Shown here: in pieces, positions 25,060 to 60,146 of the stretch
How the letters are laid out: each line of letters starts with the position of its first letter
Position numbering within the stretch: position 1 is the stretch's first letter
DNA from: Lepidodermella squamata
Taxonomy: Eukaryota > Animalia > Gastrotricha
DNA: 64,000 bases
Reading direction: 5' to 3'
Assembly: GCA_047495785.1 (NCBI GenBank)
Contig: JBLDXI010000042.1
Coordinates: 2,480,001 to 2,544,000 of the forward strand
Notes under the pieces: generated by a model
Seen by the model: only the letters and a program-made list of their open reading frames with translations
What the model was told of the DNA's origin: nothing
Databases searched by the model: none
Translations under genes and position numbers: made by a program

Positions 25060-25836
25060 TTAGATTTCAACGGCCTGTTCGCAGTGGCGCAGAAAGCACG
25101 TCTGGCAAATGAACGGTTCACTTCGACAGCCAGCGCAGAAGTATCGCGTCAGCACACTTTCCGTCAACGTTGCGCTGACATTGAAACCAAGAGACAGCGC
25201 ATTCGCTAGGCACAAACGGCACGGCGATGTCAAATCGTCCGAATCCGTCATTTCCAACTTGTGCTCTTTCGGCTCGCGATTGTTGAACGTTGATGAATCA
25301 GCGGCTGAATTACTGTAAAATTCTGTCAACATTTCTTCGTTGTCAATTGTCGACCGTTCCGCGGAGATGGACAGCATCGGAACCATCGAGTTCATCAAAT
25401 CTTCGTAGGATGGATTTTCCGGATCGTCATTGCTAGTGTTTGGCCCCTGCTCTTCGTAGATGGTCTCGAAACCGTCGTAGCCATCGCCGCGATCTGACAT
25501 AGTTTGCGACAAAATTTCAGCCCCGCGAAGGTTCGAAAAACTTCGATGTCGTTTTCTAGACGGGGAGGAGAGCACTGAAGGGGTAGATTGCGTTTGTTTA
25601 TCTACGAGAATCTCCAAGTTCCGCTTCCTGAAGTTTGGCCCAATTTCCACATTTTCGGTCACATTTTGAGCAGCTGGATTAGGGCTTAGATTTAACTCCA
25701 ATAAGTACTCGGACACCGTTTTTCGAGGCGATGCGAGGCCTGGATCTCGAGCTCTGTCGTGTGAAATCAAATGATGCGTGAAGCGAGACGAATTATTCGA
25801 AAAAAAGTTGCAAGAGTCACAGCGATAACGCGCCAT
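25060..25836 (-). CDS. Array gene A: N-terminal C2H2 finger + 1 piggyBac-type cysteine-rich domain (CRD)
   Basis: MARYRCDSCNFFSNNSSRFTHHLISH; HKL..PCRLC..TRYFCAGCRSEPFICQTCFLRH. Confidence 0.8.
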   Translation of the reverse strand: MARYRCDSCNFFSNNSSRFTHHLISHDRARDPGLASPRKTVSEYLLELNLSPNPAAQNVTENVEIGPNFRKRNLEILVDKQTQSTPSVLSSPSRKRHRSFSNLRGAEILSQTMSDRGDGYDGFETIYEEQGPNTSNDDPENPSYEDLMNSMVPMLSISAERSTIDNEEMLTEFYSNSAADSSTFNNREPKEHKLEMTDSDDLTSPCRLCLANALSLGFNVSATLTESVLTRYFCAGCRSEPFICQTCFLRHCEQAVEI

Positions 25837-25965
25837 TTTAAATTCGAAAAACAACTAAAATTCTAAAAAAAACACAGCCGAAAAATTAAGGGGGATTTTT
25901 TATTTTATTAACTCTCATAAATTAATTTTTTCGCAGCTAGGAAAAATAAAATGAAATATCAAAAT

Positions 25966-28482
25966 TCAAACAACAGTCGGCGGGAAAACTTCATCTATGT
26001 CAATAACGGGCAGCTTTTCGATTTGCCTGAGATGTTCATCGAAACATTTCGAACATACAAAAGTGTCATCAGGGCAGCCAGCGCAGTAGAACGGCGTTCG
26101 ACGCGCTCTTATCCATATTTCAGCCGATGACAGGCCGCCTTCGGCCCGCAGTTTTGACAGGCACAGCGTGCAGACTGATTTTAGCGATTTCGTCTTGACG
26201 GGCTTTCTAACGTGCGCCGACAACGGCTCGGCGATCGTTTTCAGAACAGCCAATTTTTCGTCTTTCAATTTTACAGCCAATTTAAACTAGACAAAAAAAT
26301 CACAGAAAATTCCAGAAAAATTATAGCAAAATGTATACCGAGCCGGGCTTGGAAATTGACTGCTTCTTCTTCTCCTTTTTCGGGTTCAAAATAGGCGCTT
26401 TCATCACGGGTCTTGATTTGTGAATATCAATGCAGTTTATGCAGACAAACGGATAGCCGTAACATGATTCGCAGAATACTATCGATCTTTTCGGCGTCAA
26501 TCGCACGCCTTTAGCTTTACACTCCACGCATTTGCCATGTGTCATTCGATTGTTGGAAGAAACGCGTCGATTGCTGAACGAAAAAACGTGGGCTAACTTC
26601 TTAGGCCGACCTCGCATTCCTTTCGGCCGCGGCGGGTTGTTAATTGCACTCAATTTAACTTTCGACTTTGACAATGGAACAGTTTTCGATACAGCAGGTA
26701 AGCACAGGGGAGGCGAAAGGCTGAGAGGAATCGGGACATAGGTTACTTTCGCGTAGTTGTGGTCATTATGCGGCTCTTCTCGAACTAGAACGTCAGGAAT
26801 TCGGAGGCGCTCCATAAGAACGACTGGAACTAGATTACGATCGACAGCAGTGCGGGTCGAAGTGGCAGCTTTCTGACTCGACGATGACTGGCTAGACCCA
26901 GAAGATACTACAATTTGTTGCTGAGTTTCAATCACAACTGCTGGACGTTCGAATTTGAAAACTCGCTCGAAAACTCCCAAATTGGGATCCAAGTCAGGAT
27001 CCAAAGCGGGATAATCGATATTCTGTAATATTCAAATAAAATCACTGAGACAATCCAAGAGCTCACTTTAGCTTCTCAACGCAAAAATTTGCCGATAATT
27101 GCACGTTTTCGATTTAAATCTGCCCGAAGTAATCCATAAATCCCAAATCATAAGCAGCAGTAGTGCTCAGTCACTAAACATCAGGGACCTCATACCCTAG
27201 AGATGAAAAGGCTCATTTTTCCAGACAACTTATGCCAACCGACACGTGACTAATTTCCGCCTACAAACGATAGTTGACGGTTACAGGAAACTGGCTTGGC
27301 CAAAAATAGAATTTTGCCTGATTTTGCCTGATTTTTGCCGTAGTTACCGAAATATAAGCCTCCCCTCGTTTAGAAGCCTGTCTCATTTAGAAGCCTAGGT
27401 AAATTGGAATTCTTTGATGCATAGTCCTATCTCGAATAGTAGCCTAGGCTATTACGGCATATGTGCACTTCCGAGCTTAACGGTTATAAAAACAAAAAAT
27501 GCCTGAAGATGTTTGATAATCTGCGATTTATGATGATTTTTGCTGTGGCTCTCCTTATTATTCTTAATTTTCAGCTATTGGGCGACCTGGGTAATAGCTA
27601 GTAACGTAAAATTTGATAAGTTTTGAGACTGAAACACGCAAAATTATGTCACGCCTTCGTTGCATAAGCCTATCTCAAATAGAAGCCTAGTCTTGAATAG
27701 TAGCCTACTTTTCCCCATTTTTCGAGGTATCATTTTTGCAGAAATCCGGGTTAGTATTTCGGTAACTACGGTACTTGGTGGAACTACCGAATCCACTAAA
27801 TCGCTATCGACTGGAACAAAAATTGTTGAAACGCGCGATTTGGGTAGATTTGGGTAGATTTTCTTGAAATGTGGAGAACTCGAAATAACGATGCTTTGCC
27901 ACCGCGACTAGAACCCGAGAAATTTTAAATTTTCGTTTTTTCCAAGAAATGACATGCTTGAAAATTTACCCAAATCGCGTTTTCAACCATTTTGGTCCAG
28001 CCAATAGCGATTTTGAGGATTCGGTGGATCCACCAGAATACTCAATTTAGGGAAAACAGCTAGTTTACCTGATGCCCGGATTCTGCTATAACATAAGTCA
28101 TTGATGGCTCGACCTTGAAATGGTGGACAACGGGCGGGATATGGCAACCATGACACGGACTTTCTGACACGATCGGATCATTCAACACCAAAGACGAAGC
28201 CAAATTAGTATTCGACAACGACCGCTCCGAGTAAGTCGCCGGGTTTCTACTCGTTGTCATCGAAGGCGTGAGTGGCAACGGCACGGTGACCGGAGTCTGG
28301 CAGACGGCGAGATGTTCGAGCAAGAGGTCTGTTATACTTGCGCCATTCGACATGTGAATGAAAAGCTGGCAATTCCGCGGGCACCACCTGCCAGCCCCAT
28401 CCTTGTGGCCGTTCTGATGCTCGCTATACTGAATTATATTGCTCGTGGCAAATAAACAAATATCACACAAGTAACGAGACAT
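25966..28482 (-). CDS. Array gene B: C2H2+C2HC module, PxVxM, DHNY, AT-hook, 2 CRDs; exons 28482-28069, 27022-26339, 26286-25966
   Basis: Phase-0 GT-AG joins (SGHQ|NIDY, KPGS|FKLA) unite three ORF-track ORFs; intron 1 carries two MITEs. Confidence 0.75.
27338..27771. mobile_element. pogo/Tc2-like MITE (434 bp)
   Basis: 17-bp perfect TIR CCGTAGTTACCGAAATA; internal repeats TAGAAGCCT/TAGTAGCCT; TA on the right, TG on the left. Confidence 0.85.
27774..28038. mobile_element. MITE with ~80-bp imperfect terminal inverted repeats
   Basis: Left tggtggaactaccgaatcc..aaatcgctat..gcgatttgggtagattt matches the reverse complement of the right end; TA on both flanks. Confidence 0.75.
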
Positions 28483-28539
28483 TCTAAAAATAAACAAAAA
28501 AATTCCCATAATTTCTTTAGAAAAAAATTAAAAAAAAAT

Positions 28540-29744
28540 CTATACGGCTTGCTTGTGAAGTTCGAAGCATTTCTCGCAGACTGAGGGTCTTCCGGGGCAC
28601 AACGAACAGACATATCTGGTCGAAGTGGCGACTTGTCGAACAGTTTCTTCCTTTAGGGAAAAACCTCGGAGCCTGGCCAAACATTCGACACACAAATTAT
28701 TCGCAGTTCCGGCAGGATTTTCAACCAAATTGTGGCATCTTTCTTCCTCCCCGGTTCCAATGATGCCACAATTCGAGGCGAGATTTTGCGTAGAATCTGA
28801 TTTTGCAGCCTCTGTTTGATCTTCGACCTTCGTCTCAAAATTTGCCGGAAAAATATCAAAGACCTGAAAAAATAAGCTTGAATATAATTTTTGCAATTTT
28901 TAAATAAAATTTACTTCGGTTTTTACGAAGTCCAGCGATCCATCGGTTTTTATAACTGGAATTTCCAGCCATGATTTATGGATATTCTTAATAGCTGAAC
29001 TGGGCTCTTTTTCAGCTTGCTGCGGGATTTCCACTTCAACAAAAGACTCCGAATTTTGAGGCGCGAGATTTGAATCGGATGCTTGTTTCTAGAAAAGTTC
29101 ATAGATGGTTGGTACTGGGAAATTTTTATTGGAACAAACAGAAGCTATCGTCAATTTCACCGAAGAAACGCTGTCTGAATCACTGCTGTCGAGAACCACC
29201 GACGAAGTATTTTCGAAAACGTAGGGTAGCTAAGATGGCTTGAAAGTTAAAAAATCAGAAAAATATTGGAAAAATTACCGATCTTCGCGATGACAAACTG
29301 GTGGTACGAGATAGAGCCGTAGGTAATGATACAACATCGGAAGTTCTGCGTCGAGGATCTTTCATTTGATGATCAACCTAATATTGAAAAATTCAGTAAT
29401 TATGGCCGAAATTTATATTATTCCGAAATGCTCACCTGGACGATTTCGACCGAGCCGTCGCTTTCGGCATCGCAATCGACAACATTTTTCGGTTTCATCT
29501 TCGCCACTTTTTTCGGTTTCCGCTTCAATTTCAGCGCTTTTCGAGCCTCGAGCGAAAGTTGGCAAACCTTCAAATGTTTGAATAGCATTTCCTTCGCGTC
29601 AAATTTTTTCGTGCTAGTAACGAAAAGCCGGCATTTTCGCGGGCACCATTTGCCGGTGTTCTTTTTATGAGCAAGGCGATGTTCCGAAAATCGAATTGGG
29701 TTGCTCGTCGCATATAGGCAAAATTTGCATAAATACCGAGACAT
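28540..29744 (-). CDS. Array gene C: C2H2+C2HC module + 1 CRD; 4 exons
   Basis: MSRYLCKFCLYATSNPIRFSEHRLAH..WCPRKC..HLKVC; last exon HNL..CVEC..TRYVCSLCPGRPSVCEKCFELH; three short GT-AG introns. Confidence 0.75.
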
Positions 29745-29848: not shown

Positions 29849-30633
29849 TCATTTTTCAAGTGGCATTTTACGATGCTCAGTAAAGCATGGGACACATAGG
29901 AAAGGCTTGTTCGGACAGGTAGAGCAATAGCGATAGGTCTGAGTCGCGACTTGGTCCACGTTTTTCGCACCCTTTTCTTCGAGTTTGGCCGTACAACCAA
30001 CACAACGCGTTGCTCGCTTGAATTCGGCTTTTGCCAGCTCATGGCCATTCATCGGGCTCGTGTTCGATATCGGGACCTCCTTATTCACCTTAGGCTATAG
30101 AACCAACCGTATAATTAATCAGAAATTAATTATTCAAAACGATACTTTCGGTTTCTTCCGAGTTTCAACCAGCTCGAAAATATGGTAGTCGTCGAAGCAT
30201 TCTTTGCAAACAACAGGCTGGTGACTGCAGGTAGCGCAGTATCTATTGGACCTTTTAACAGCGCTGTTAGCCTCTCGTGCCGGCATGCCAACGGCGCGTA
30301 AACGCTGGTAGCAGGAATAGCACCGATCAGGTCCCTTCCCAACACCGGTTCCTCGTTTCTCAAGTCGATGCTTCGGTGCCTGAAATAGGATCAGAGAACT
30401 AGAGAATTTCTTTGAATTATAACAATATCCACAAAAATACTTATTTAGAGTTGAAAATTTCATACAATAAAGCCCGCAAGTAACATATTAAAATGAAATT
30501 TTTCCAACATTCTTTGTTTTTTGAGAATACCGGCTATCATTTTGCTACAACTATAATAATAGGGATTGCGTAATTATAAGGAATTTACCTCAGCATCGAC
30601 TGGATTCACAGTTTTTTCCGCTTTCACTTTCAT
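29849..30633 (-). CDS. Array gene D: 2 CRDs; 3 exons
   Basis: MKVKAEKTVNPVDAE|APKHRL..CYSC..NRYCATCSHQPVVCKECFDDYH; HEL..CVGC..YRYCSTCPNKPFLCVPCFTEH. Confidence 0.72.
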
Positions 30634-31407: not shown

Positions 31408-32046
31408 TCATTCCTCAATCGGCTGGGTTTGGTGTTCCAAAAAGCATTTCCGGCAGATGAACGGTTTGCTTTTGCATGCAACGCAGCAGTAAGCTGTCTG
31501 GCGAGCCGTGGCGTAGGCTTGCTTTGCCGTGACTCCTGCGGCTCGAATTCGTTTCAAACACATTCTACATCGCTTCGATAGGTGGGTGCCCTTGCTTTCG
31601 TTCTTCAAAATCGGATTAATCTGCAGCACATGCCCGTTTCCAATCAAAATCTTCTCAACGCTTTTTCGTCGTGAACGGGATCGCCTGCTGTTTGATGACT
31701 CGGAGCTACCTGAAAATAAGTTTCTCGCAGCACTTAAATTGGCCTCGTTTTCGAACAGGCAGTCCTCAACTCGCGGTTCTTTCTTCATCAAAACTGGTGC
31801 GGTAATAAATTCCTCGGTGGCTTGTGTGAAAAAATGCGAAAAAGAAGCGTTTGGGGGTTCAGAAGTTGAAACAAAGCAATTTTTCAAATGTTTATTCACG
31901 GCTGACATGTGACTGTCTTCAAGGTAGAGGCCACAGAGACGAGGGCACCAGGTACCGAAATTTTGAATGTGAGCAACTTTATGAATGGTAAATTCGATAG
32001 GGTGATCTGAGGTGTAACAGCAAGTCCCGCAGGCATAACGTAACAT
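31408..32046 (-). CDS. Array gene E: C2H2+C2HC module + 1 CRD, single exon
   Basis: CGTCCYTSDHPIEFTIHKVAH..WCPRLC..HLKNC; CRMC..TAYCCVACKSKPFICRKCFLEH. Confidence 0.8.
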   Translation of the reverse strand: MLRYACGTCCYTSDHPIEFTIHKVAHIQNFGTWCPRLCGLYLEDSHMSAVNKHLKNCFVSTSEPPNASFSHFFTQATEEFITAPVLMKKEPRVEDCLFENEANLSAARNLFSGSSESSNSRRSRSRRKSVEKILIGNGHVLQINPILKNESKGTHLSKRCRMCLKRIRAAGVTAKQAYATARQTAYCCVACKSKPFICRKCFLEHQTQPIEE

Positions 32047-32097
32047 TTCAATCTCAAATACACCTAAAAGGTCAAAGTAACGAAAATAATAGATTTT

Positions 32098-33144
32098 TCA
32101 GGTTGCTTCCTTTTCAATCATAATATGACTATCGAAGCAGTTTCGGCAAATGCGGGGTTTCCCAGGGCAAGTTTCACAAAAATGTACCGTTTGAAATGCC
32201 CTTCTCCGCGCAGCTGAGAATTTCAAGCCTTCCTCCACCCATTTATCGATACAACTCGCACAACTCAGGCGTTTGAGCTGTTTCACACCTGGGCCCCGGG
32301 TGAGTTTACCAATCACGTGATCTGACGACTTTACAGCAGTTCGTGTTTCGATTGTTCCACCAAGGTGAAAGTGGGTGAAACACTGTTGACACATCGCCGG
32401 CTGGCCTTCACACGAAGAACAGAAGTACTCAGTCTTTCGGCTCCCATTAAACTTGACGCCTTCGTCCAAGCATCGGGATTTACACATTACGCAACGATTT
32501 CTTGAAATAGGATCCCAAGTAAGGCGATGACCTGGCTCACATTTAACAATTAGCGGCTCAGGTTCCCTATCCGTATAGTGGAAATTAAAGACTGGCTTTC
32601 AGATTCCTGCTACACCTGAAACTTACTTTTCAACAGGCGATGCGTTATGAGCGGGGAAGCAATTTCGGCAAATAAAAGGCTTTGAAAAGCAACTGCTGCA
32701 AAAGAAACTCGCTTTTCTGACTTTCGCTGCTCCTTTGCTCTCAACTGCTTTTTCTTTCGTTGTTCCTTCTTTACTCTTTCTAACACAGTCTCTGCAAAGC
32801 TTGTAAGTTGGCATGCCCTTGCTGTCATTTCGCTGGGCCATTTTATGAACATCCGACTTGAACAAACTCGCTAGAAAGTCACGCCTCAAACCGCTGAATG
32901 GAACAATTACTCCATCAGGGTGTTTCGCGATGAAACAATCCGGGCAGAAATTCGGCTTCTCAGGGCAATCGCTGCAGTACTGACAGGTGCGCTTGCGATC
33001 ACGACAAATCGAGCACCTCTTGAATAGACGCTGAAATTGGCCGTCTTTCGTTATCTTCTTTTGTTCAGTAACGACAAGGCGATGTGGCTCATTAACAACG
33101 GGCTCAAGCTTAAAAGAACTCGCAGCAACAGATGGCTGATACAT
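32098..33144 (-). CDS. Array gene F1: 4 tandem CRDs; 2 exons (phase-2 intron ~32567-32626)
   Basis: ASPVEK|EPEPLIVKCEPGHRL join links ORFs 32623-33165 and 32098-32487. Confidence 0.8.
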
Positions 33145-33303: not shown

Positions 33304-33720
33304 CTATTGGCTACATCTCTGATTCGAATCGATCAGAACATTCTCTGAAGCAAGAACGGCACATGGGCGGTTCGCCGTCGCAATCACCAAAGATGTGTAG
33401 AGGAAAAAAAAACGAAATTTTTTCAGGCTTCTTCTTCGCCAATTATTGCGTGACTGTCGAAGCAGTTTCGGCAAATGCGAGGTTTCCCTGGGCAAGTTTC
33501 ACAAAAATGCACCGTCCCACGTGCCAATTTCTGCGCAGCTGCGAATTCCAAGCCTTTTTCCACCCATTTATCGATACAACTCACACATTTTTTGCATTCG
33601 AGTCGTTTCACACGATAACTTAATGAGTTTGGAAAAATTGATATCGGAAAATCGGAGTTACAAGGGCAAAAATTATATTAGGAAATGTTACTTCTCAACA
33701 GGCATAACGTAACACTTCAA
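33304..33720 (-). pseudogene. Scrambled relics: 3' end of a G-type gene, last CRD of an F-type gene, truncated start of an E-type gene
   Basis: GDCDGEPPMCRSCFREC fragment; CVSCIDKWVEKG..CETCPGKPRICRNCFDSH without an upstream gene; E-type ATG changed to GTG and cut after a few codons. Confidence 0.7.
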
Positions 33721-33767: not shown

Positions 33768-35598
33768 TCAGGTTGCTTCTCTTTCAATCATAGCATGACT
33801 GGCAAAGCAGTTTCGGCAAATGCGGGGTTTCCCTGGGCAAGTTTCACAAAAATGTACCGTTAGACATGCTTTCCTTCGTGCTGCTGAGAATTCTAAGCCT
33901 TCCTCCACCCATTTATCGATACAACTCGCACACTCGAGCCGTTTCACACCTGGGCTCTGGCTGAGTTTCCCAATCACGTGATCTGGCGATTTTATAGCGG
34001 TTCGTGCTTCGATTGTTCCACCACGGTGAAAGTGGGCGAAACACCGTTGACACATCGCCGGCTGGCCGTCACACGATGAACAGAAATACTGCGTTAATCG
34101 GCTTCTATTAAGCTTGATACCTTCGTCTGCGCATCGGGCTTTGCACATTACGCAGCGATGTCTCCCAAGACGAATCACGTTAAGGCGATGACCAGGTTCA
34201 GGCTTTACAAATACTGCGCTATTTTCATGTCCTCTGAAAAAACAAAAATAGGAAAATTGGGGGCTGTATTTGATATTCCAGCACCACCACCAAGATGCAA
34301 CAATTCAAATGCTTTCAATTTTCCGCTCTCGAATTTTGAATTATTTGAAACTAGAGCCTCTCGCTGGTCTGCTTGCTATCTCAGGCATCAATTTATAAGT
34401 TTTTTGGGATTTCCTGAAGTTTACAACCACTAACCTCCGCGGCATATATTTCTGACGTATAGTGTATAGGGTCTTCATTTTTGGTACCACTAAAAATGAG
34501 GCTCCAGCTTAAAAATTGAGCACTAAATTTTTCCGAATTCAGCCCTTCCGTTTGTTGATCGATACTGATGCCCTCCCTGGATCTGGGATTTTTTATTACA
34601 GCAAATGGTGCTCCAAGCTATTCAGAAAATTAATTGATGCTGGGTTCGAAGTCTGTTTACATATATCAGAAAAATCACGGATTAGTAAAATCGATACTTG
34701 AAATCGATATTGATTCTGCAGGCTGAAATATAACTCACAAACAGACCGCTCATATCGCAAAATACGCGTACCATGAAGATGTATTGACTAGGCTCAAAAA
34801 TATTGAGATTCCAGTGAAACCTTGAAAATCGAAAAACCACAAGTATATTTTGGCGAGAATTAGTGCTGAATCCCGAAACCTATAAATATAAATACGAACC
34901 AAACCAGTCTCCTACAATTGCAACTTTTCAAGCGCGCATATTCCCGTGTTAATCGCCGGAAAAATTATTAGGTCGTAGGTATCTAATGCGAAATGAGAGA
35001 AAGATGATGGGACGAACGTCAACCTCGATTAAAGGCAACTATATACTACTATACTATATACTAGGAAAACTTACTTTTCAACAGGCGATGCGTTATGAGC
35101 GGGGAAGCAATTTCGACAAATAAAAGGCTTCGAAAAGCAACTGCTGCAGAAAACTAGCGATGTTCTAATATTCGCAGCTCCTTTGCGGTCAGTTACTTCT
35201 TCTTCCTTTATTCCCTCTTTACTCTTTTTAATGCAGTCCTTGCAAGGCCTATTAACTAGCCTGCCCTTGCTGTCTCTTCGCTTGACCATTTTATGAACAT
35301 CCGATTTGAACCAACTCGCTAGAGAATCAGCTCTCAATCTAGGCGGGAAGGGAAGAATAACTCCATTAGGGTGCTTCGAAATGAAACAATCCGTGCAAAA
35401 AAGTGGTTCGTCAGGACAATCACTACAGTATTGACAGGTAAATTTGCCACCACACATCGAGCACATCTTGAATGGACGCCGAAACTCTCCGTTTTTTCTT
35501 TTCTTTATTTTTTCAGTAACGACAAGGCGATGTGGCTCATTGACAACAGGCTTACAATAACTCGCTTCCCTTGCAGTAACGGCTCGCTGATACATCAT
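33768..35598 (-). CDS. Array gene F2: 4 tandem CRDs; 2 exons with enlarged intron 34234-35074
   Basis: Paralog of F1/F3; ASPVEK|GHENSAVFVKPEPGHRL join. Confidence 0.78.
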
Positions 35599-48700: not shown

Positions 48701-51147
48701 GCAGTGAAAATTTCAATTCGAAATGAAAATTTGGGAGAAAACTAACATCCGCAAAACTCGGGAGCGCAATACATCAACTCGTCGATTGAATCTTCTGTGG
48801 TAATGCAAAATGGCACACGCCCGTCAGAAGGGTTTCGGCAATAGTTAGCAACGGCATCGCGATTCCATTTTTCAGGAATATTCTGACGCCTAGATAATAC
48901 AATTCTTCAATTATTGAAAAATTAAGCGGCGGAGATTTTACCAAGATTGCGGCCATTTGTTCCAATCCGGTAAAGAATTCCAAAATCGGCAGGGCTCTCC
49001 ACAAATCGTTCGGTTCATTGAACCGGCATACTCCAAGCCTTCGGGTGTTCGTCTGCAATCCTTCTCAAAAACTAAAAAAAGTCGGTAAAATCAGCAGGAA
49101 AATAATCGATAAACTGAACAAACTGCTTTCTTTGGCCTTCGAAAGTTTGACCGAAACTTGAGGAGAGTTAAAAGCTTGCAATTCACTTCCACTCTGGTCA
49201 GAGAACCAAACCGAGAAGCTTCCAGTAAGACCATCCCAGAGTGATTCATCCATTTCATAAGCGGATTGAAACATCCGAGGATTGCCGAAGTATTGAAGAG
49301 AAATATTAACGTAACCTTCGTCCACAACACTCGACTCAATTTCAATCATTTTAAACGGCATTTGATCAAATTGTGAATTCCGCTCGCCCTCAACTGATCG
49401 ATTTTTGTAAGTCCATTTTGCAAAAGATTGACTTTTTTCGATAGTATCTTGGCCAAATCGTAAATCAATTCCAAAGGTGCAGTCGGTTTCATTCCGACAA
49501 CTTTCGATTTCTTTGACAAAACAGCGATATACAACGTTGAGAGGCTGAAATTCTGGTACGGTGAATTGGACAACTTTCATTCCGAAATTCGTAACATTTT
49601 CAGCGACGACAGAACAGAATTTTTCCATCTGCTGCTGCAACTCGCTAAAAAACTGACACTTGTCACGTGATTTGCCAAAAAAGTAGGTCGGGAAATTTCC
49701 TTCGAAAAACGGAACGGAACTGCTGAGAGTCGTCAAGTAGTTTTCGAACGAATATAACACAGCTATTGTGTAGCGAACTCCTTGCGTCACATTCGCCAAT
49801 TTGTACCGAAATTCAATAGCGCTGAGATCGAAACTGTACTCGGCAGCTGTTCGGGTTGCCACGATAGGCGAAGGCTGGTACATCAAAACGTCTTCATCAG
49901 CGAAAACGATGAACTCTGGGTTGCAAATCAGCCATTTTGCGGTGGATAAGATTTTGCAAGCATGAAAACTTCGCTGGTAGCGCAATTTTATGCTTATTTC
50001 AACTAAGGAATTCGGCAAAATTTGCTCAAGACAAGACTCATCGCCAAAAATTACTGAAACTCCAAAGGTTGACCAGCTTCTACCGTGATCGATATAATGA
50101 ATTGATTCATTAACTTTGGCCGAGAACTCGAGCAAAGGTGTTTCAAGATGGGAAATTATGTGATATTCGATTCCAGCAGGAACAGAATTTCGAGAATAGT
50201 TCAGTCGATAAATGCCCTCGTGTTGATTCATTCCGTCAGAAAAATTCAAGTAAGCCCGGCCTTTAATCAAACCATGCCTCGTGAAATGAGCGAAAGCAGC
50301 GGCTGGAGGTGAAGTGACTTCCTGGTTGATGATATCACGTTGGAACATGTATTCCTCATCAATCAGTTTGCTCCAATTAGTTTCGATCCAATCTTTAGGC
50401 GCAGAAATGAACAGGCTTGAAAGCGAATAATTTGACCACCTCTTATCGACAAAAGTTTCATCAACAATCGGGATGTTGAAATGTGGAACCAGATCTGAAT
50501 CAAATAACATTGATCAGCTGACATAAATCAACGAAAAAAATATTACCTTCCATGAAAGCTAGTCCACGAAGCACGTACCAGATGCGAATACTCCCGAGAA
50601 TAGTATTGTTCAATTCCGAAAATTCCTGGCTTCTGTACAGAAGAGAAACCTGGTACTCCCCATTAGGATTTTCGCGTAATGCAGTCAACCGGTTGAAATT
50701 GTACTTGGTCAAATGAAAGGAGATCGAAAATTTTGAAATTTCGGAATCATGGGAAACCGCAATGCTGCGGCTCTCTCCGAGTCCAAGGTTGTCGACAGTA
50801 ATATCCTTCAGCAGACCGTTACTTTCAGAAAATCCAGACGCTTCAAATTCAATGAAATTATTCCGAGAAATAATGAAGATCGGCTCGCAATAGATCCGTT
50901 CGCCATCCTCGCACAACTTATGGGGAAGCTTTTCAAGGGAAAATCTAATGATCAGTTTCACATCTTCCCGCTGCGGCCAAGCCGAAAAAAGGACCTGAAC
51001 CGACGGACTCGGATAATCGGTGATTTTGTAACCAGATACAAGTACTCGAAATTCAATATTCGAGATCAGGTCATTTTTCTTCTCAGAACTGACTACGAAT
51101 TGTGAGATTAGAAGCGAAATCAGGACGGTAGTAAGTAACCATCTCAT
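45763..51147 (-). CDS. Large secreted/GPI-type kringle-PAN(apple)-Ig-like mosaic protein, 1723 aa; exons 51147-50547, 50494-49124, 49071-48942, 48889-48747, 48689-45763
   Basis: Four 52-57 nt GT-AG introns give a 5172-nt open frame; signal peptide MRWLLTTVLISLLISQFVVS; kringles DCRRTPEGLEYAG..NYCRNPSDGRVPFC and DCHLF..YEG..NYCRILPG..APWCY; PAN-like CAQRC..CKSFMF..C and CQEEC..CSGFFF..C; Ig-like DTGLYRC; hydrophobic C-terminus. Confidence 0.75.
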
Positions 51148-51216: not shown

Positions 51217-53121
51217 TCAAATTTTGACCGGGCTAATCATATGTTCCTTGACACAAAATGAGCAAATAATAGGCTTTCCAGCGCAAGAATCGCAGAATCG
51301 ATAGCTGGTATGGGCCAGTTTTGAAGTCAAGCTCGGTTCGACGCCCTGCGAACGAAGCAACTCGAGACAATCGTGGCAAGGAAACGACCGGCGTTTCTCC
51401 GGCTTTTCACCCGGTCGCAGTTCTAGCTCGCGCATGACGTGGCTCGTTTTCGAACTTGGCGAGTCAGTTTTGACAGGCTGCAAAACGTGAAAAGCACGGC
51501 ACGCCTCGCAAACCCAAGGCCGATCAGCACATGTGGCGCAGTAGAACATGGTCAATTTAGGACGTGGGGCTTTTTTCGTTGAAATGCCAGTTTTAGCTCT
51601 GAAGCGCAACACGCAAAACAAGCAAGGTTGAGCGTAGTTATTCTTCCCACCGCTCTGTTCACGAATCGGAAATTTGTGGAAAACGTGACCAGCTGATTTC
51701 GGGTACTCGGCGATGATAGCTGTGTTTACGGGAGTGCCGTCAAATTTGTTCGACTGAATCTCGAGGCTGGACGAAGCAGGAGGGCGAGTTTCGGAACGCG
51801 GTAGCTCGAAGACTGGCGGAGCTGAGGTGAAACTTGATGTTGAAGGTATATCGCTGCTGGAGGGTGGGTCGAGAACTTCGATTTTGAACACGCTGCCATC
51901 TTCATCGTCGCTGACGAGAACAAAGTTGGGCGAAGCAGGCTGAAATAACAACTTATGAGAATAATTTAACATTTAACCCTTTCACAGCCGAATTTTCTAT
52001 CTCAGGAAGATAAAACATTTGACAGCATTTCTAAGGGTTCTCGGAAGCCCTGATCACGATTTTGAAACCCGCTTGTCTTTGTCTATCACCGTTAAGACTG
52101 TGCGAAAAGTGGTCAAAATCGCCCTGTCGGCCCAGCTGATTTCAGGCCTTTTTGTGCACCCTGATTTCTTCATCAAATGCTCCCGACTTTGGATTTTGCG
52201 ATTCTAAATTACTCCCTAAGGTCCCTAAAATCCGCGATTTCGACCACTTAACTAAAATCAAGGCAGAGCCCTTAGTTTTTGTCGAAAACTGATGAGAAAA
52301 TTTACACACAGGTCAATGGGACTATGCCAAACACTGTAGTATTTTTTGTTTGACCGGATAATGAAATTGGGTTAACTTCATTTCAAATTGAAAAAAATCA
52401 AAATTTTCAAATGACTATAATTTCAAAATGGTGCGAGTTAGCGGTTTGATTGTTTCAAATTCTTGTAGCCAACATCTAAAAGTAAAATGGCTCAAAAGGA
52501 CGATCAAAAATTCATCAAATTGAAATGTTGGTGCGTCGTCAAAACCGAATTTCCGAAATCGCACTTAAGGCCGTGAAAGGGTTAAAAAATTAAATAATGA
52601 AAATTCCAGCTTAATAATTTTAAATTTTGATGAAGAGCTAAAACAGCTTTCTGCATTAGCAAATAAAAAAATCCCACAAGTCTCGCTGTTGTAAAAAAAA
52701 ATAAAAAAATTTGAGTTCTCACTTGGAGTTTAACATCCTCCTCGTTGACTTGAACAGGAGATTGCGGAGTTTTCGTCGGTTTCGCCGGTTTGATTGGAGG
52801 TTTCTTTTTCGATAGCCTATCGTAACGCCCATAGGAATTCCGCGGCATGCGTCGATTGCCATCTCCTGAGAAGGCCACCTCGAGTCCAGCACCCATTGTC
52901 GACGTAGGCAAGACTGGCGGCAGAGCCCCGCCCACCGGAGCCGGGCAAATTGTCAGATGGGCAACGAGGTTATCGCGTTCCGAACCTTCGGCAATGTAAA
53001 TTTTGCAGCCACGAGGACACCATCGACCCGTTTGACTCGAATGAGCGGAATGATGCGCCTGGAACTCAATAGGATTGTTCGTTACAAATTGACAATCGTT
53101 ACACAGAAATCGTGAAGACAT
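51217..53121 (-). CDS. Array gene I: C2H2+C2HC module + 2 CRDs; intron 51940-52722 contains a piggyBac-type MITE
   Basis: VKLQ|PASPNF phase-0 join; MSSRFLCNDCQFVTNNPIEFQAHHSAH..WCPRGC..HLTIC. Confidence 0.78.
51977..52581. mobile_element. Non-autonomous piggyBac-type element (605 bp)
   Basis: TTAA|CCCTTTCACaGCC ... GGCcGTGAAAGGG|TTAA: 13-bp TIR (1 mismatch) starting CCC, TTAA duplication, no transposase. Confidence 0.88.
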
Positions 53122-53170: not shown

Positions 53171-53848
53171 TCAACTAAATTTCCCTAATTTATGCGACTC
53201 GAAACAATCAATGCATAGAAATGGTTTGTCTTCGCAGGTTACACAATAGCCTGAGGTTAGATGAGCACGCGGTTCCGCGCTTCGAGTCAGGCTGATTCTT
53301 GCAGGGCAATCTCTGCATCGATACCGCTTCGTCGATTCGATCCGAGCCCATTTGTGTAGAATCAACGGCACCTTTAGGGCAGATTTCTTCATTGTAACTA
53401 GGTGGGACTTCTGACAATGCCCACACAACCACGGCCGTTTTTCGCAGGTCGCACAATAATAGCTGGTCATGGTTACCTCTTCCAGGGCTCTGAATTGAGC
53501 CGGCTTCATGCGAGATAGACATGGGACACATGGAAATTTCCGAGGCTCTGACGTGCCAGGAATTAATATTTTTGTCAACTCAAAACGATGCTTTCCACTC
53601 AATTTTTCACCAGTCGTGGATTTCGCTACCAGTATCACGTCAGATTCTGAGCTGGACGAAGCGATGGACGCTTGTTTTTGAACAACTGAATTAGGATCCG
53701 GCAGAGGACAAGTTCGCAGATGATCGAGAATAGCGAAACGGCTCGCGTTTTCGAAAACTTTGTACCCGCAGCCGCGGGGGCAAGTTTTGAGAACAGGTGC
53801 TTTAACGGAATCACTAGACGATTTATTCAATCTGCTAGATCTTTTCAT
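53171..53848 (-). CDS. Array gene J: C2HC half-module + 2 CRDs, single exon
   Basis: CPRGC..LDHLRTC; CVPC..TSYYCATCEKRPWLCGHC..H; CRDC..TSGYCVTCEDKPFLCIDCFESH. Confidence 0.8.
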   Translation of the reverse strand: MKRSSRLNKSSSDSVKAPVLKTCPRGCGYKVFENASRFAILDHLRTCPLPDPNSVVQKQASIASSSSESDVILVAKSTTGEKLSGKHRFELTKILIPGTSEPRKFPCVPCLSRMKPAQFRALEEVTMTSYYCATCEKRPWLCGHCQKSHLVTMKKSALKVPLILHKWARIESTKRYRCRDCPARISLTRSAEPRAHLTSGYCVTCEDKPFLCIDCFESHKLGKFS

Positions 53849-53924: not shown

Positions 53925-54754
53925 TTATTGTTTAACAATAGGAACAATAGCATGCGAGGGGAAGCAATCCGAGCAAATAAACGTTTTTTCAGCGGCACAC
54001 AAGCAAAAACGAGTGGTTCGTTTCCTGGGTGTTTTCTGACACTCTCTGCATGTCTCGCTTTCCTCCCCAGTTAACCAAACATGCCCGTTAATGATACCAG
54101 GTTCTTTCGAGAACTATGACGAAAAAATCAGAAAAACAAGCGAACATATTTTCGGGTAAACAATACCTTCATCAGAACTAAATTTTCTGGAGTAATGCCA
54201 TGATTTTCAATATAGCAACTTCTGCATGAATGAAGATTCTTGTCACATCCGCGGCAGGTGAATCGTGTTGTTGTTGGGAGAAAGTTTTCAGCCGCCATCC
54301 CATAACGCCGAAACTTATCCCGGCAAAAATTGCAAGGCTTGGACGCAAACGCCTTCCAAAGAGAATGCTCTTTTCGTTTGTGATTCGAAGATTTTGGAAC
54401 CACCTCAGGTTCATGAGTAAGATCGACCGGAATCGGTCTATCAGAAGAAATATTCGAATTCGATTCAACTTCGTCGGCATAGCTCGAAGATATGTAATTC
54501 AGAGAATTCGATTTTTCCGATATTTTCCGAAACTTCGGCAGCGATTCCATTGAAAAATTATGGCACAAATTGTTGTGTTTTTCAAGAATTTCATGGTCTT
54601 CAAAATAAAATTTGCAGTTCAGTGGGCACCAGTAACCAATTTCAGCCTCATGCGCAGTTAAATGCTCCATAAATTGAACCAAATCGTTAGTCGCAAAACG
54701 ACACTCATTACACCGGAGAACGTCCGAGTTACAACGGCGGTTCATTATGGTCAT
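53925..54754 (-). CDS. Array gene K: C2H2+C2HC module, PVDLT motif, 2 CRDs; intron 54114-54166
   Basis: Exon 2 (not in the ORF track) reads FSKEPGIINGHVW..CREC..TRFCLCAAEKTFICSDCFPSH..*; start could also be the ATG at 54745. Confidence 0.75.
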
Positions 54755-54793: not shown

Positions 54794-55537
54794 TTATTTA
54801 ACCGGAGTCTTAGCGTGTAAAACAAAGCAATTATAACAAATATAAGTCCGCTCGCTCTTACAAGAACAAAATCGATTCGTGAGCCTCTTCGTGCACATGA
54901 TACACTGTTTAGAGTTCTTCGCAATGTCTCTAGCGAATCGCCAAACATGTCCATCCAAAATTCCAATTTCATAGCTATTCTGTTAGGAGAAAGTTTAGAA
55001 AAATTACTACAAAAAATAGTCGAGGCGAACCTTGAATATCAAGGTGTATTCTCTCCACATATCACCGTGATTTTCGATAAAACAACTGCGACACATCGGC
55101 TTTGATACTCCGCAACCTATACACGAGCAACGAGTTTTGATCGGACGAAATTCATCCGATAGGCCGTATCGAATCAGCTTTGCGGGGCAGAACAAGCACG
55201 GTAGATACTGCCTCCAGATTTTCAACCCATGTTTCGGGCCGGTTGAAGGATCTAAAGGCATCTCAACACTATCTTCCATTTCCGACTCACTTTCGTATAT
55301 TGTCGATAATTTTTCCAAAGAATTAATTTTCTTAGAGCTGCATGCCGCCACAGGGTTTGGTGGCGAGCATACAGCGAAGTGCTTCATGAGGCTATGATCA
55401 TTTTCCAAGTAGAACCCGCAATTCAATGGGCAAAAGGCACCGCTTCCCGATTGATGGGCAGATACATGCTGCGAAAAATGGGCAAAGCTATTAGTTGCAT
55501 ATCGGCAACGCTTGCATTCATTAAGGATGGCTAACAT
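54794..55537 (-). CDS. Array gene L (paralog of K): C2H2+C2HC module, 2 CRDs; 2 exons
   Basis: IFK|NSYEIGILDGHVW..CIMC..NRFCSCKSERTYICYNCFVLH..VK*. Confidence 0.75.
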
Positions 55538-55678: not shown

Positions 55679-56333
55679 TTAATCGAAATCGACTTCAATC
55701 AACGAGAAAGAAGACATCGATCTAGCAGCGCCAAGTCGGAAATGATCTCGGAAGCAGTTGACGCATTGGAAATCTTGACGTGGGCAGGTCTCGCATTTGA
55801 AAACAACACGGCCATCTTCGCATTTGCAAATTCGAAGTTCAGAAACATGACTCCAGCTGTGGCCAGCACATTCAAAAGCCGAGCGGATCAACTGCAATAA
55901 ATACATTTCAATCGATGAAATCAATCAGAAACTGCCATACCTTGCCGTCTGATGAATGAATTTCGCTGAAACAAAGATCGCACAAGAAAGTACCTTTAGG
56001 GCATCCACCACAAAACCGAGTCGATTTGCGAAATTTGGGCAAAGCATCGGCCCAAGAATCCGACCCAAGAAGAAATTTCGTGATGCAGTAGACGCAAACT
56101 CGATCCGGACCTTGAACGAACCCTGTTTCTTCTTTCAATTGGTGTCGAAATTTAGCTCGAGTCTTGACAGTTACGACTTCACCAGGAGTCAACTTTTGCA
56201 AAATGACAACTGGGGATTTCGAGTCCAATTTTCCAGAAATCTTCGGGTTCAACGCGCTTAATTCGGCGTCCGATAACTTGACGACTTGAACAACAGGTTG
56301 TTTCGAGAAGTCAAAATTGATGAAATCATTCAT
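55679..56333 (-). CDS. Array gene M: PVVQV/PVVIL motifs + 2 CRDs (second divergent); 2 exons
   Basis: SDGK|LIRSAF join; CVYC..TRFCGGCPKGTFLCDLCFSEIH. Confidence 0.7.
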
Positions 56334-56905
56334 TTTCTATCAAGGGTCTAAAAATTTGTTTCAGTGAAATTGAGGTTCGAAGGCTAAATTTGAGCAATCT
56401 ATCGATAATTAATTCCGATTTTTGTGATTTAGAACTTTTTGAATAAACGCTTTTAGTAAAATTTTGAAACCAATTCTGGGGATTTCAAATTCTCAAATTC
56501 AGCGCTGGAACCCTGTATTTAAGTAGCGCACTTGGCACACGCTACAATTTACTGCTGGAAAGTCTCACGAGACAATATCAAAATTTGAGCGATAAGGGCA
56601 AGCAAAATGCGGAAATTAATCATGCACAACCGTTCAACCAATAACGTGTCCTTTGAAACAAGGCATGCAGAGTTCAGGAATACCAGGGCAAGTCTTGCAA
56701 AATGTAAAAAAATTGCCCCTCAATTTGCAACGCGAACAATTCAAGAAGTTAACCGTGTTCCATCGCGAGCGACAGGGGTTAACGGTAAGAACTCGCTTGA
56801 CAGCTAACTCGTGACCGGCATAGGTAGAAATTGCACCAATTTGGATTATCGGAAAATCGCCCTGAAAATCATCGGTATATAATTGTCAAGATATTTCCCT
56901 CAAGC

Positions 56906-58715
56906 TTATACTTTAGTTTCAGTTTTGTTATGAACCACAAAACACTTCAAACAAATCTTGGGCGATTTCGGGCAGGAAATGCAGCGGTACTTAGCGGATC
57001 GTGTTTTCTTACAAACACGGCATCGAAAGCTGCTGCCCGATGTTGCCTTTATCAAATGATTCGGCGACGGCATGCCGTTATCCAATGGCACATTCTCCCA
57101 ATTAACAAATTGTGAGGGAATTTGTCTACAATGCAATAGATCAGGTAGATTTGTCGTAAGGTCACAGACTTCGGATTGCACCATTTTCGACGAATCTTCA
57201 ATTCCCTCAGCAGCCTATTGATAAGTTTTCAAAAATGAAAAAAATTAAGGCGACTTTGACTTACCGTCATTTCCTCGAAACCATCATCGCTTATTTCGAC
57301 TGGCGTGATTTCAGGATCGCAATTGAAGCCAGACGATGATCGGCTCTCGGCCACAAGACGTTGCACAGCAACCTTAACAAAATTAAATGAAATTTAACAT
57401 AAAAATCTGGATACCTACAACATATGGCTGCACAACTTCCGGGGACTTTCCCGATTTCAAGCTGATATAAGTAGAGCGTGTCCCAGAATTTCGATTTGGC
57501 AACTTTTTGTAGGAAATTCAACAATTTTTTTTTAACCCGGAAACCCCCGATGGTAACTTCGGTAATTTTCGGTATTTTACCTGGTTTGACCAAATTTCTC
57601 CAGACTTTTTTAATCTCAAACAGGTGACATGACTGACTTCATTACTGTTGTCGGGATTTCTTGAATATTTCTACAAATTTTCTGGCCATGAGATGTGACT
57701 TCGTCTCTCATTTTAATGTTTCTTCACCCTGTCTTTCCTTGCGTTACTCATGGGACACGCTGTATATGACTATATTTGTACAGGTTGGCCAAAAAGAGCT
57801 GCAGGGGGCAAAGTTTCGAGAAATTTAAGAGTTTCATGGGCAAAAGAATGCTTGAAATTCTTCAATATCTTAAAGCCCCTCATTAAATTGATGCGCAGTC
57901 AATGAATTTCGCCCCCTCTTTCGGCTCTTTTTGGCCACCCTGTAAAAGGCATATTGTGAGTTACCACAAGGAAATAATTAACCCGTTTAGACCGGCATCT
58001 AGGATTTTAATGCTACGGTCATAATCTTTTCAGGAATTAATGTTGGTATCATAAATATGAGGAAAAAATGTTGGTGACCCCATCCCAACCGTTTCCGAGT
58101 TACGCAATGTCCCATTTATGGGACGCTCGGTCATTCTTATAGGCAAATTTAGAAATAACCATATAAATCATAATTTTGTCATACTAGTGACTCAGGGCGT
58201 CAATAAAAGAGTGACGAGCCAAACTATCTCTATCATCATTTTGGGTGAACGAATAAGTCCAGAAAGTCCAGACAGCGTGCAAACGAAGCGAGGAAAAGTT
58301 TTGGATTGCTAGCGGGAAAAAATAATAAAAAATGTTTGGAAATAGGGATTTTTTCTGGAAATTTTCAAACTATTTACAGGGAGCGCTCCATTTTCGCATG
58401 TTCTGCAGCCGTGAATTTACCCTGAATTTATACCAAAATAAGCGTTGCTCATCCTTTTTTCACGGAAGAATAGGAAGATAAGAGACGGAAGAGGAAGAGC
58501 CTACCAATGTTGTCTCCGATTCACGACAGAGTGTTTCGATCGATAAAATTCGAGGCCGCTTCGAAGAATGTTTCCGAGTCAAATCCAGAGGCTCATCAAT
58601 CTAAGCGAGAGAGAATAAATAATAATTTAAAGAAAGAACAAGAAACGTGAAAACTTGCCATTGGTTTCAATGTAACATCAGACGTGAAATCAAGTAACTC
58701 CAGTTCGAAGTTCAT
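56906..58715 (-). CDS. Array gene N: multi-exon, PLDLT motif, 1 C-terminal CRD; middle exons uncertain
   Basis: MNFELE..LKPM|(GC-AG)IDEPLDLTRK..; later VVLQRLVAE..EEMT|AAEGIEDSSKMVQ..HLI..CRVC..AKYRCISCPKSPKICLKCFVVH. Confidence 0.5.
57474..57762. mobile_element. Tc1/mariner-type MITE
   Basis: TA|gAGCGTGTCCCA ... TGGGACACGCTG|TA. Confidence 0.7.
57781..57942. mobile_element. Tc1/mariner-type MITE (162 bp)
   Basis: TA|CAGGtTGGCCAAAAAGAGC ... GCTCTTTTTGGCCAcCCTG|TA. Confidence 0.85.
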
Positions 58716-58954
58716 AATCAATCGATTCAATGTATCTGACCTATTTAAAACCGATTTGCCAACTCAATTTGCGAAAAGAAGCGTTACATTTTTAATCGAA
58801 AAAATTGAGTTTTCGCCAAACAGAAGATGGTCAGAAACAACAAAGGCAACATGCATCAATTCTAATAAAAAAACTGAGGCTACGCTTTTCAAATCAACCT
58901 GTTTGAGCTGAAACAAGGCGCTGGGACTTGGGTTGAAATACAAAAATCACCCGA

Positions 58955-59478
58955 TCACATGTGTTTTAAGAAACAGCTTTTGCATAACGTCGGCTGCGAA
59001 GGGCAAGTTCCGCAAAAATATGAAGATTTGCCGAAACACATTACACAATTTCGTTTTCTGATGGTGTCCCATTTTAGCCCGCACGATCGTATTCGGCGCT
59101 TCAACATCAGTAAGTGTCCTTCCCAGCTTCCAGTGGCAACGACTTTGACGACACGAGTAACGTCCTAAAACGAAACGAATTCAAAAATAACAGTGCGTGC
59201 GTTTCTTTCGCAGAAACTATTACCCCGGCTGTGCGGTCATGTTGTTGAAAGCAACGTAGGCATATTGCGGGGCGAGCAGTCGAGCAGTTAATAGCAGTTT
59301 TACCATCGGGCCCACATATCGTGCATGGCTCGCCATGCTCGGCGTGTTGGTAAAGTGCGCGCAGCCGCGGCAGAATTTTCGTGTCAGGGAGGACAGGAAT
59401 TTCTAGAATTGTCGACCATTCGATTATTTGGGGTGTATTATTCCTGGTTTTTAGCGACAGGTCAAGAGGTTCGGCCAT
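58955..59478 (-). CDS. Array gene O: N-terminal PLDLS + 2 CRDs (first degenerate); intron 59165-59223
   Basis: MAEPLDLSLK; TAG|DVTRVV..HLL..CVMC..SYFCGTCPSQPTLCKSCFLKHM*. Confidence 0.72.
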
Positions 59479-59623
59479 CAAAAATAATTACTAACAACAA
59501 TAAAGAAAATAAAATGATACATTGTCGCAAACAATAAAATTTTTAGACTGTACAAGACATGCAAGCAAGATGAGCTGTAACGTAGATATTTCAATAGTCA
59601 AAACTCAAAACCACTGCATCAAA

Positions 59624-60146
59624 TTAGGTCATCGAAAAGTCTGCGTCTGCCTCCGGCTCGGAAATCGTTTTGCCCCTACCGCGCGGATAAGCGAATATCT
59701 GATACAAAATTGGGCATTCAAATTATTGAGTTTCAAGAGGAAGAAACTGAGACCTCAGTGGCAACTGGCAGCTGTTGAGGTGGTGGATCAGGGTTGAACG
59801 GCGGTTGGAACGGAGTTAGGTGTTGCTGGAAAGGTTGTGCCATGGCTGCTGGAGGAACAGACCACGCCGGTGGGTTATAACGGGGATCGCAAGGATTGTT
59901 ATAGATGGCAGGCGGGAAAGTCGCTTCAGTCGGCTGATAGAGCGGCTGCTGATAACAAGTCGACGTAATGACGCTCTTCCCGTCGCCAACGTAATAAAAA
60001 TAATTGGTCGGCTGGGAGATTTCGTTGGGTGGTGGCGCTAGGTGGCCATTTATATGGCCGTCGTAGAAAAACTCAGGATTGTCCGTCGTTAACGGGCAAG
60101 AATTACAACGAAACGAATGATAATCGGCAGGTGCAATCGATAGCAT
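59624..60146 (-). CDS. Array gene Q (first of the array): C2H2-like finger + Pro/Gln-rich region, no CRD; intron 59699-59753
   Basis: FRCNSCPLTTDNPEFFYDGHINGH resembles the family N-terminal finger; VATE|IFAYPRGRGK..*. Confidence 0.55.

Follow-up and report, generated by a model that had tools for sequence, protein, structure and literature searches.

A tandem cluster of candidate regulatory genes built from stand-alone piggyBac-type cysteine-rich domains in the gastrotrich Lepidodermella squamata

The window analysed here, a 64,000-nucleotide stretch of the genome of the gastrotrich Lepidodermella squamata (assembly GCA_047495785.1, contig JBLDXI010000042.1, positions 2,480,001 to 2,544,000 of the forward strand; all coordinates below are those of the window), harbours a tandem array of genes for small, mostly basic proteins that consist almost wholly of one to four copies of a cysteine-rich domain (CRD) akin to the one at the C-terminus of piggyBac transposases. 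The interpretation that we favour, with a probability of roughly 0.7, is that the array is a lineage-specific tandem cluster of about 20 host genes, each with one to four CRDs of the piggyBat/PiggyMac/PGBD4 type, whose products likely act as regulators that recognise composite DNA sites. On this reading, the DNA-binding domain of a transposase was captured by the host and became a clustered family of zinc-finger genes.

It is well recognised that new transcription factors can arise when a host captures the DNA-binding domain of a transposase, as with the THAP, BED, FLYWCH and CENP-B-like domains. To our knowledge, every piggyBac domestication described so far (PGBD1-5, PiggyMac, Tpb and LIA5) keeps the transposase core. 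The original prediction, made from the DNA sequence alone, had claimed that no such array was known, and this was borne out within open-access papers and preprints, in which we found no description of a CRD-only array, only piggyBac domestications that contain the core. At this locus the building block is the CRD alone, with up to four copies per protein, in combination with classical zinc fingers and in about 20 clustered genes that are under purifying selection. If these CRDs bind DNA, they would constitute a new modular DNA-recognition family, a natural system in which to learn how a transposon-end-binding domain diversifies its specificity, and a direct test of whether hosts turn a transposase's own recognition domain against the transposase.

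The repeated domain and its relatives

A loose regular expression for the C-terminal half of the motif (C..C.{2,9}C..C.{2,4}[HC]), run on six frames of the whole 64-kb window, gave 49 matches, all 49 of them on the minus strand and between positions 25081 and 59014; there were none on the plus strand or beyond these limits. A hidden Markov model (HMM) that we built from 44 domain copies and ran on all stop-free segments, with a domain cut-off of i-E<1e-3, gave 53 matches (25075-59125), again all on the minus strand, of which about 46 are full length and the remainder relics. This bias in strand and position is beyond chance. Both searches agree with the earlier manual count of about 49 domains plus relics and with the earlier claim that all of them lie on the minus strand.

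The aligned copies describe one domain of about 60 residues, in which H-x-L is followed after 8-20 residues by CxxC, a variable segment of 7-28 residues and T-x-aromatic, and in which the second half reads CxxC, x-G/x-K-P-x-hydrophobic and CxxC-F-x2/3-H. The conserved columns are H4, L6, C22, C25, T43, the aromatic residue at 45/46, C47, C50, P51, G52, K53, P54 (91%), C57, C60, F61 (87%) and H64/65, in agreement with the residue pattern read from the sequence originally. All 37 copies that cover column 4 keep the histidine, the six cysteines (C22, C25, C47, C50, C57 and C60) are 98-100% conserved and a histidine occupies either column 64 or column 65. All window copies have the same CxxC-x6-CxxC-x3/4-H spacing, and the loop between the first and the second CxxC is between 7 and 28 residues long. 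The charge is mostly basic, with a median isoelectric point (pI) of 8.9 and a pI above 8 in 34 of 42 CRDs.

A profile of the 44 window domains, searched against 1.84 billion representative proteins, returned 288 matches at E<=1e-3, down to a library-wide E of 3e-8. Among the 20 matches that are at least 450 amino acids (aa) long, 19 carry PF13843, the DDE_Tnp_1_7 transposase core, with the match at the extreme C-terminus, the 20th being a BTB protein; the mid-size matches are C-terminal fragments of transposases. When isolated domains were compared with Pfam, PF13842 (zf-Tnp_2) was the strongest family (best E 9.7e-8; 15 of 44 members at E<=1), member 1 scoring 16.8 bits against a gathering cutoff of 24. 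As to the Pfam assignment proposed originally, ten whole open reading frames (ORFs) gave no match to PF13842 at the Pfam threshold, only sub-threshold noise from B-box, UBR and ZZ families; the domain is recognised by Pfam or profile searches only once it is isolated or turned into a profile. The conserved columns recur in CRDs attached to transposases, which have in common with the window CRDs not only the ligands but also L6, A36, K53-P54 and F61.

The fold ranking points the same way. An AlphaFold2 model of the CRD (predicted local distance difference test score, pLDDT, 83.5) retrieved piggyBat (9c0f) at rank 1 and the PiggyMac CRD (6zop) at rank 3 in Foldseek. In a re-alignment with VIA it reached Z 4.6 to piggyBat residues 506-569 (root-mean-square deviation 3.0 Å over 53 residues, 23% identity), compared with Z 2.8 for C1 domains and Z 2.3 for the B-box. 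The cross-brace fold anticipated by the original prediction is thus found in the model, which fits the piggyBat CRD best and the PiggyMac CRD and C1 domains next. Other Pfam families were hit by the isolated domains as well: an ANCHR-like B-box by 20 of 44 members (best E 2e-4, below cutoff), C1_2 by four and ZZ by three. A B-box, ZZ, PHD or C1 identity was rejected on the profile, Pfam and fold rankings, which all place piggyBac-type CRDs ahead. A resemblance to C1 is expected for the class of the piggyBat and PiggyMac CRDs (PMC8086355).

Judged by profile and model, then, homology of the window domain with the C-terminal CRD of piggyBac transposases holds. The CRDs of piggyBat, PGBD2-4 and PiggyMac form a class in which a histidine ligand lies upstream and the fold is a C1-like cross-brace; the CRD of the T. 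ni transposase is PHD-like and falls outside this class (PMC8086355, PMC11707139). With its upstream histidine and seven further Cys/His ligands, the window domain is by sequence and predicted fold of the piggyBat/PiggyMac/PGBD2-4 type and not of the T. ni type. The T. ni CRD (5LME, 6X67/68) has the same position in the transposase and the same role as the piggyBat-type CRD, binding the transposon-end repeats, but it differs from the window domain in motif (CxxC-CxxC-CxxH-CxxC) and fold (PMC8086355, PMC11707139); its structure was recovered neither by a sequence-profile search of the PDB nor by a fold search with the window domain. The profile search, the Pfam ranking and the fold therefore uphold the piggyBac CRD family of the original assignment; its T. 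ni precedent for DNA binding does not apply, and the relevant precedent is piggyBat.

The closest counterparts are the CRDs of piggyBat from Myotis lucifugus and of human PGBD2/3/4 (PF13842), which like the window domain have an upstream histidine followed by CxxC, CxxC, CxxC and His, together with L6, K-P ahead of the third CxxC and F61, and which include the best structural match. Unlike them, the window CRD stands alone, occurs up to four times per protein, lacks an accompanying DDE_Tnp_1_7 core and has a loop of 7-28 residues. The Paramecium PiggyMac (Pgm) CRD belongs to the same variant class with the upstream histidine and the C1-like cross-brace (PMC8086355), and PiggyMac, like the window family, is a domesticated piggyBac derivative that has multiplied into paralogs. 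Yet the Pgm and PgmL proteins keep the transposase core, which is sometimes inactive, and have one CRD each; moreover, most window CRDs are basic, in contrast to the acidic Pgm CRD, which fails to bind DNA.

Two of the profile matches combine a BTB domain with a CRD at the C-terminus, namely a mod(mdg4)-like isoform X5 of Anopheles (XP_040156876.1) and a Stegodyphus protein annotated as transcription factor GAGA-like (XP_035204485.1). With the window CRD at 55950-56144, the C-terminus of the former shares 41% identity over 93 aa and the latter 31% over 65 aa. Like the window proteins, these are host proteins with a CRD and no transposase core; unlike them, they have a single C-terminal CRD and are neither multi-CRD proteins nor part of a tandem array. 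By sequence, core-less host use of the CRD thus arose elsewhere too, in a classic transcription-factor architecture. In the open-access papers and preprints, the CRD of these BTB proteins was not found discussed as a piggyBac CRD. The BTB-CRD fusions in mosquito and spider suggest that co-option of the CRD is recurrent and under-annotated.

Distant CRD-only and two-CRD predictions also occur in metagenomes and run assemblies (e.g. P0001 and P0002), and some multi-CRD predictions in other animals resemble nested transposon fragments (e.g. P0032). On a JGI metagenome contig of 5309 nt (L001), a CRD-only gene of 144 aa (P0005) and a second small gene adjoin a protein-primed family-B DNA polymerase (PF03175), which suggests, as far as the sequence goes, that CRD-only genes reside in a Polinton/Maverick-like element of another organism. 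A search of the ESM Atlas gave weak C2H2-like leads only, with scores <=0.85, and an exact-sequence look-up of the window ORFs in the protein collection gave no entry.

Evidence for a host gene family

When the 20 profile matches of at least 450 aa (19 piggyBac transposases and one BTB-CRD protein) were compared with the window by tblastn, 846 of 897 high-scoring segment pairs lay in the C-terminal CRD and nothing better than E=0.1 was obtained outside it; Pfam likewise found nothing of the DDE_Tnp_1_7 core (PF13843) in the ORFs of the window. Terminal inverted repeats (TIRs) flanked by TTAA were not found round the CRD gene units in the window, the sole transposon-like inverted repeat being a miniature inverted-repeat transposable element (MITE) within an intron. 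The earlier observation that neither a transposase core nor flanking TIRs accompany the genes was therefore confirmed by tblastn, Pfam and an inverted-repeat search, and the units are not TIR-flanked transposon fragments.

The coding sequences appear to be maintained. Recent paralogs, at synonymous divergence (dS) of 0.15-0.68, have pairwise ratios of nonsynonymous to synonymous substitution (dN/dS) of 0.37-0.71, with all ORFs intact. Partitioned along the proteins, dN/dS is 0.36 in the zinc scaffold (confidence interval, CI, 0.29-0.45), 0.61 in the variable loop (0.46-0.80) and 0.55 in the linkers (0.44-0.70). Every bootstrap CI lies below 1, so that dN/dS is not near 1 in any of the partitions: all of them are under purifying selection, which is more relaxed in the loop than in the scaffold. 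As a pairwise average over paralogs, the value of 0.61 gives no sign of positive selection in this putative DNA-contact loop. Codon usage is host-like: GC content at third codon positions (GC3) is 0.462 in the CRD genes and 0.465 in neighbouring genes, and relative synonymous codon usage correlates between the two at r=0.69, compared with 0.34 for an antisense control.

Gene structure is conserved as well. At least nine genes have a phase-2 GT..AG intron directly after the second CRD, with the donor context ...PVEK/SEVET followed by GTAAGT, GTGAGT or GTAAT, which bears out the conserved introns noted originally. Three genes with CRDs of the types A-B-C-D alternate with three of the types A'-B'-C' at a spacing of 2.4-2.9 kb, forming direct-repeat families. 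In a tree of the CRDs, these position-specific types group as clades across genes, as in a clade of eight type-B domains, indicating that whole multi-CRD genes were duplicated after the CRD positions had diverged. Given the absence of core and TIRs from the window, the dN/dS values below 1, the host-like codons and the conserved intron, we read these sequences as a host gene family and not as debris. The original proposal that the domain was detached from the transposase and multiplied into a host cluster is upheld by the lack of a core, the tandem paralogs and the purifying selection, and parsimony favours a transfer from transposon to host over the reverse.

The array shares with the KRAB-ZNF, ZAD-ZNF, THAP, BED and FLYWCH families its tandem clustering, its repeated zinc modules and a birth-and-death mode of evolution with pseudogenes, and with THAP, BED and FLYWCH a domain of transposase origin. 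It differs from all of these families in its predicted fold, a C1-like cross-brace, in lacking any known effector domain of the KRAB or ZAD kind, and in showing no sign of positive selection in its putative contact loop. The parallel with KRAB-ZNF genes that had been drawn therefore extends to a tandem multi-finger cluster with turnover (repeats of 2.4-2.9 kb, a pseudogene and a fragment) but not to diversifying selection.

The MITE is of the piggyBac type and lies at 51973-52585, its 605-bp element (51977-52581; no strand assigned) having the termini CCCTTTCAC...GTGAAAGGG with TTAA on both sides. Its 13-bp ends, CCCTTTCACAGCC and GGCCGTGAAAGGG, are complementary at 12 of 13 positions. It sits inside the intron of the CRD gene at 53121-51220, and the ORF of the upstream exon runs straight into it. 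Such a TTAA-flanked insertion indicates that piggyBac elements were active at the CRD locus. Two short hairpin-like inverted repeats at 57776-57947 and 27820-27993, which have arms of 32-33 nt and loops of 106-110 nt and lie between genes or in introns of the array, may be small MITEs.

Possible functions of the proteins

What these proteins do can be approached through the company that the CRD keeps. At least six CRD genes start with the module M-x-R-Y-x-C-x2-C-x12-H-x3-H-x7-WCP-x2-C-x~15-H-x3-C, a C2H2 finger followed by a WCPxxC...HxxxC finger of the C2HC type, which always stands at the start of the protein; at least two further genes have partial copies. The AlphaFold2 model of the module has a pLDDT of 87.8, and profile and model match tandem classical DNA-binding zinc fingers, with ZNF64 first (E 4.5e-4), then CTCF, ZFP57, Tramtrack and BCL11A. 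Motifs of the CtBP-binding type are also enriched: PxDL[ST] occurs four times in the CRD-gene segments (at about 59469 and at 58591, 54430 and 45482) compared with a single occurrence outside them in sequence three times as long, an enrichment of about ten-fold, and LDL[ST] seven times (including variants at 42022, 41947, 39537 and 36677) compared with none. PLDLS-like motifs sit near the N-termini of several of the proteins. The counts are small, and as sequence motifs they suggest binding of a CtBP-type co-repressor.

The CRD of piggyBat is a site-specific DNA-binding domain, and a pair of such CRDs reads a palindrome by means of the loop ahead of the central strand (PMC11707139). By analogy with this precedent we infer DNA binding for the window CRDs, and the classical fingers and the basic charge, read from the sequence, favour it. 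Each CRD would fold as a two-zinc cross-brace with one His, six Cys and one His as ligands, and would read DNA via the loop ahead of the T-x-aromatic strand, as in piggyBat. Proteins with several CRDs would then recognise composite DNA sites and serve as sequence-specific regulators of chromatin or transcription, and some may recruit CtBP through their PLDLS-type motifs. More speculatively, the targets could be the ends of resident piggyBac elements.

Several points weigh against this reading. The agreement in structure is modest (Foldseek E 0.36; Z 4.6), and the check by sequence profile against the PDB that had been proposed failed to recover piggyBat, piggyBac or any other piggyBac-type entry, returning nothing significant (PRDM9 and TFIIS noise). 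A search with a two-CRD exon found no homolog in a word-indexed set of 5.8 billion proteins, so that the evidence of constraint comes from paralogs. The tree of CRDs, built on 66 columns, is poorly resolved, so that neither monophyly of the window CRDs nor a donor transposase lineage can be read from it, and it does not prove the direction from transposon to host; the window CRDs have long branches and are highly diverged from every sampled transposase CRD. The exon structures of several CRD genes are provisional. Of two sequencing runs compared with 31300-37300, one is a low-depth, ambiguous RNA candidate and the other is DNA-like. The RNA-labelled run has very low depth (5% of sampled words), and over this interval the runs gave only scattered low-depth contigs, which showed artefactual strand switches but not a single splice joint. 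Finally, eight of 42 CRDs are neutral or acidic, and the PiggyMac CRD, which has the same fold, does not bind DNA and binds the histone H3 tail weakly (PMC8086355), so that the fold is no guarantee of DNA binding.

It is on this last point that the CRDs might instead be protein- or histone-binding adaptors, the proteins acting as chromatin scaffolds in the manner of the PiggyMac CRD or of the FLYWCH C-termini of mod(mdg4), a scenario that we regard as unlikely while taking it seriously. PiggyMac shares not only the fold but also the ligands, its CRD weakly binds H3(1-19) (PMC8086355), and it ranks third in Foldseek. In a mod(mdg4)-like isoform, too, a CRD occupies the variable C-terminal position, where FLYWCH domains of other mod(mdg4) isoforms mediate protein-protein contacts, and a few of the window CRDs have an acidic or neutral pI. 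However, most window CRDs are basic, whereas the pI of the Pgm CRD is 5.48 (PMC8086355); the structure that fits best is that of the piggyBat CRD bound to DNA; and the window CRDs co-occur with zinc fingers of the classical DNA-binding type.

Bolder proposals extend regulation by DNA-reading CRDs to the control of transposons. It is conceivable, if rather doubtful, that the end-recognition domain of piggyBac has become a modular DNA-reading zinc-finger 'alphabet', comparable to C2H2 arrays, which silences resident elements by occupying transposase sites and by engaging CtBP-type co-repressors. Somewhat more doubtful still is the idea that the array is a dedicated anti-piggyBac system that, by analogy with KRAB-ZNF proteins and the P-element KP protein, would bind subterminal repeats and compete with the transposase or recruit co-repressors. 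It is indeed the end-recognising part of the transposase from which the domain derives (PMC11707139), the intronic MITE attests to past piggyBac activity at the locus, PxDL[ST] motifs are enriched in the CRD genes, and these genes are clustered and rapidly duplicating, with one pseudogene among them. Against such a system, the window CRDs have diverged far from all sampled transposase CRDs, no positive selection is seen in the putative contact loop and the PxDLS counts are very small.

It is highly improbable that the array consists of dead or decaying remains of transposons, or of mis-read ORFs without host function: a frameshifted copy, a fragment, several relic CRDs, the lack of transcription evidence from the low-depth RNA-labelled run and the likeness of some multi-CRD predictions in other animals to nested transposon fragments would fit it, but about 20 ORFs are intact at dS of about 0.15-0.7 with dN/dS significantly below 1, the zinc ligands are almost invariant, intron position and phase are conserved, codon usage is host-like, and the window holds neither a DDE remnant nor TIRs. 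Transposon debris was rejected on dN/dS, the intact ORFs, the conserved intron and codon usage.

The genes of the array and their neighbours

Reading of the stop-free segments yields about 20 intact genes with one to four CRDs, one frameshifted pseudogene and one fragment, which matches the original estimate of about 20 genes. All of the genes described below are on the minus strand.

The best-resolved gene (32101..33144) encodes 328 aa with four CRDs of the types A-B-C-D and no other content. Its single intron, a phase-2 GT..AG intron of 60 nt at 32567-32626, restores the frame when removed. Next to it lies a gene fragment (33335..33677) with one type-D CRD and a relic, a partial duplicate of 32094-32288. 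Two further four-CRD paralogs of the A-B-C-D arrangement are found at 33771..35598 and 37040..38073, the former with an enlarged intron that contains a repeat of high copy number at about 34516-34716. The word depth of this repeat in the DNA-like run is about 1117 compared with about 90 around it, pointing to an element repeated about 12-fold, and contigs break at its edges. The three-CRD genes of the A'-B'-C' arrangement are located at 35782..36695, where the protein has an N-terminal GDLLDLS motif, at 38713..39648 and at 41136..42082. A pseudogene of the three-CRD gene (40120..40869) has its CRD pieces scattered over three frames by frameshifts. Two older four-CRD paralogs follow at 43114..44282 and 44354..45524, the latter with an N-terminal PLDLS motif at about 45482.

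Towards lower coordinates, the gene at 25063..25836 encodes an N-terminal C2H2 finger, a partial copy of the module (25759-25827), and one CRD (25075-25269). The gene at 25969..28509, for which the joining of exons is tentative, has the two-finger module (28300-28467) and two CRDs (26411-26590 and 26026-26196), and a tentative gene at 28543..29744 has the module (29562-29729) and one CRD (28549-28734). Two CRDs (30179-30376 and 29864-30049) make up the gene at 29852..30463, the first of them being the window copy closest to the transposase CRDs in the tree. The gene at 31411..32046 again combines the module (31876-32031) with one CRD (31423-31611).

At the other end of the array, the gene at 51220..53121 carries the module (52945-53103), the intron with the MITE and two CRDs (51478-51678 and 51232-51429). 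The gene at 53174..53848 is a single ORF of 225 aa from ATG to stop, with one C2HC finger, a partial module copy at about 53740-53820, and two CRDs. Module and CRD are joined at 54131..54754 (module 54563-54712, CRD 54197-54373), with a relic CRD downstream (53949-54062), and at 55010..55537 (module 55367-55516, CRD 55061-55222), with a relic at 54806-54952. The gene at 55682..56333 has one CRD (55950-56144) and a partial CRD (55742-55804), and the gene at 56637..57184, a provisional join of two ORFs, has two short-loop CRDs (56921-57064 and 56640-56816). The last gene, at 58958..60146, is tentative; it comprises a divergent N-terminal C2H2-like finger, a partial module copy at about 60050-60120, then a Pro-rich region, a PLDLS motif at about 59469, a relic CRD (59233-59295) and one CRD (58958-59125).

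Two genes unrelated to the family, at 45766..51147, split the CRD array while lying on the same strand. Their two or three ORFs (970, 481 and 215 aa) encode large cysteine-rich proteins, secreted or of the membrane, and a Pfam scan of these ORFs gave no match. A signal peptide is seen at 51147, a C-terminal hydrophobic tail near 49068, and cysteine patterns resembling PAN/apple and kringle domains were noted by eye.

The rest of the window holds a class-C G protein-coupled receptor, a Ras gene and an NHE6/9-like exchanger. The genome is that of a bilaterian and is compact, with introns of about 60 nt. The exchanger has about 55% identity with its counterparts in many protostomes and vertebrates. 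For its exon at 7861-9276, on the plus strand, the second-best named match is labelled Anser cygnoides and scores above all other vertebrates; this entry may be an invertebrate contaminant in that assembly.

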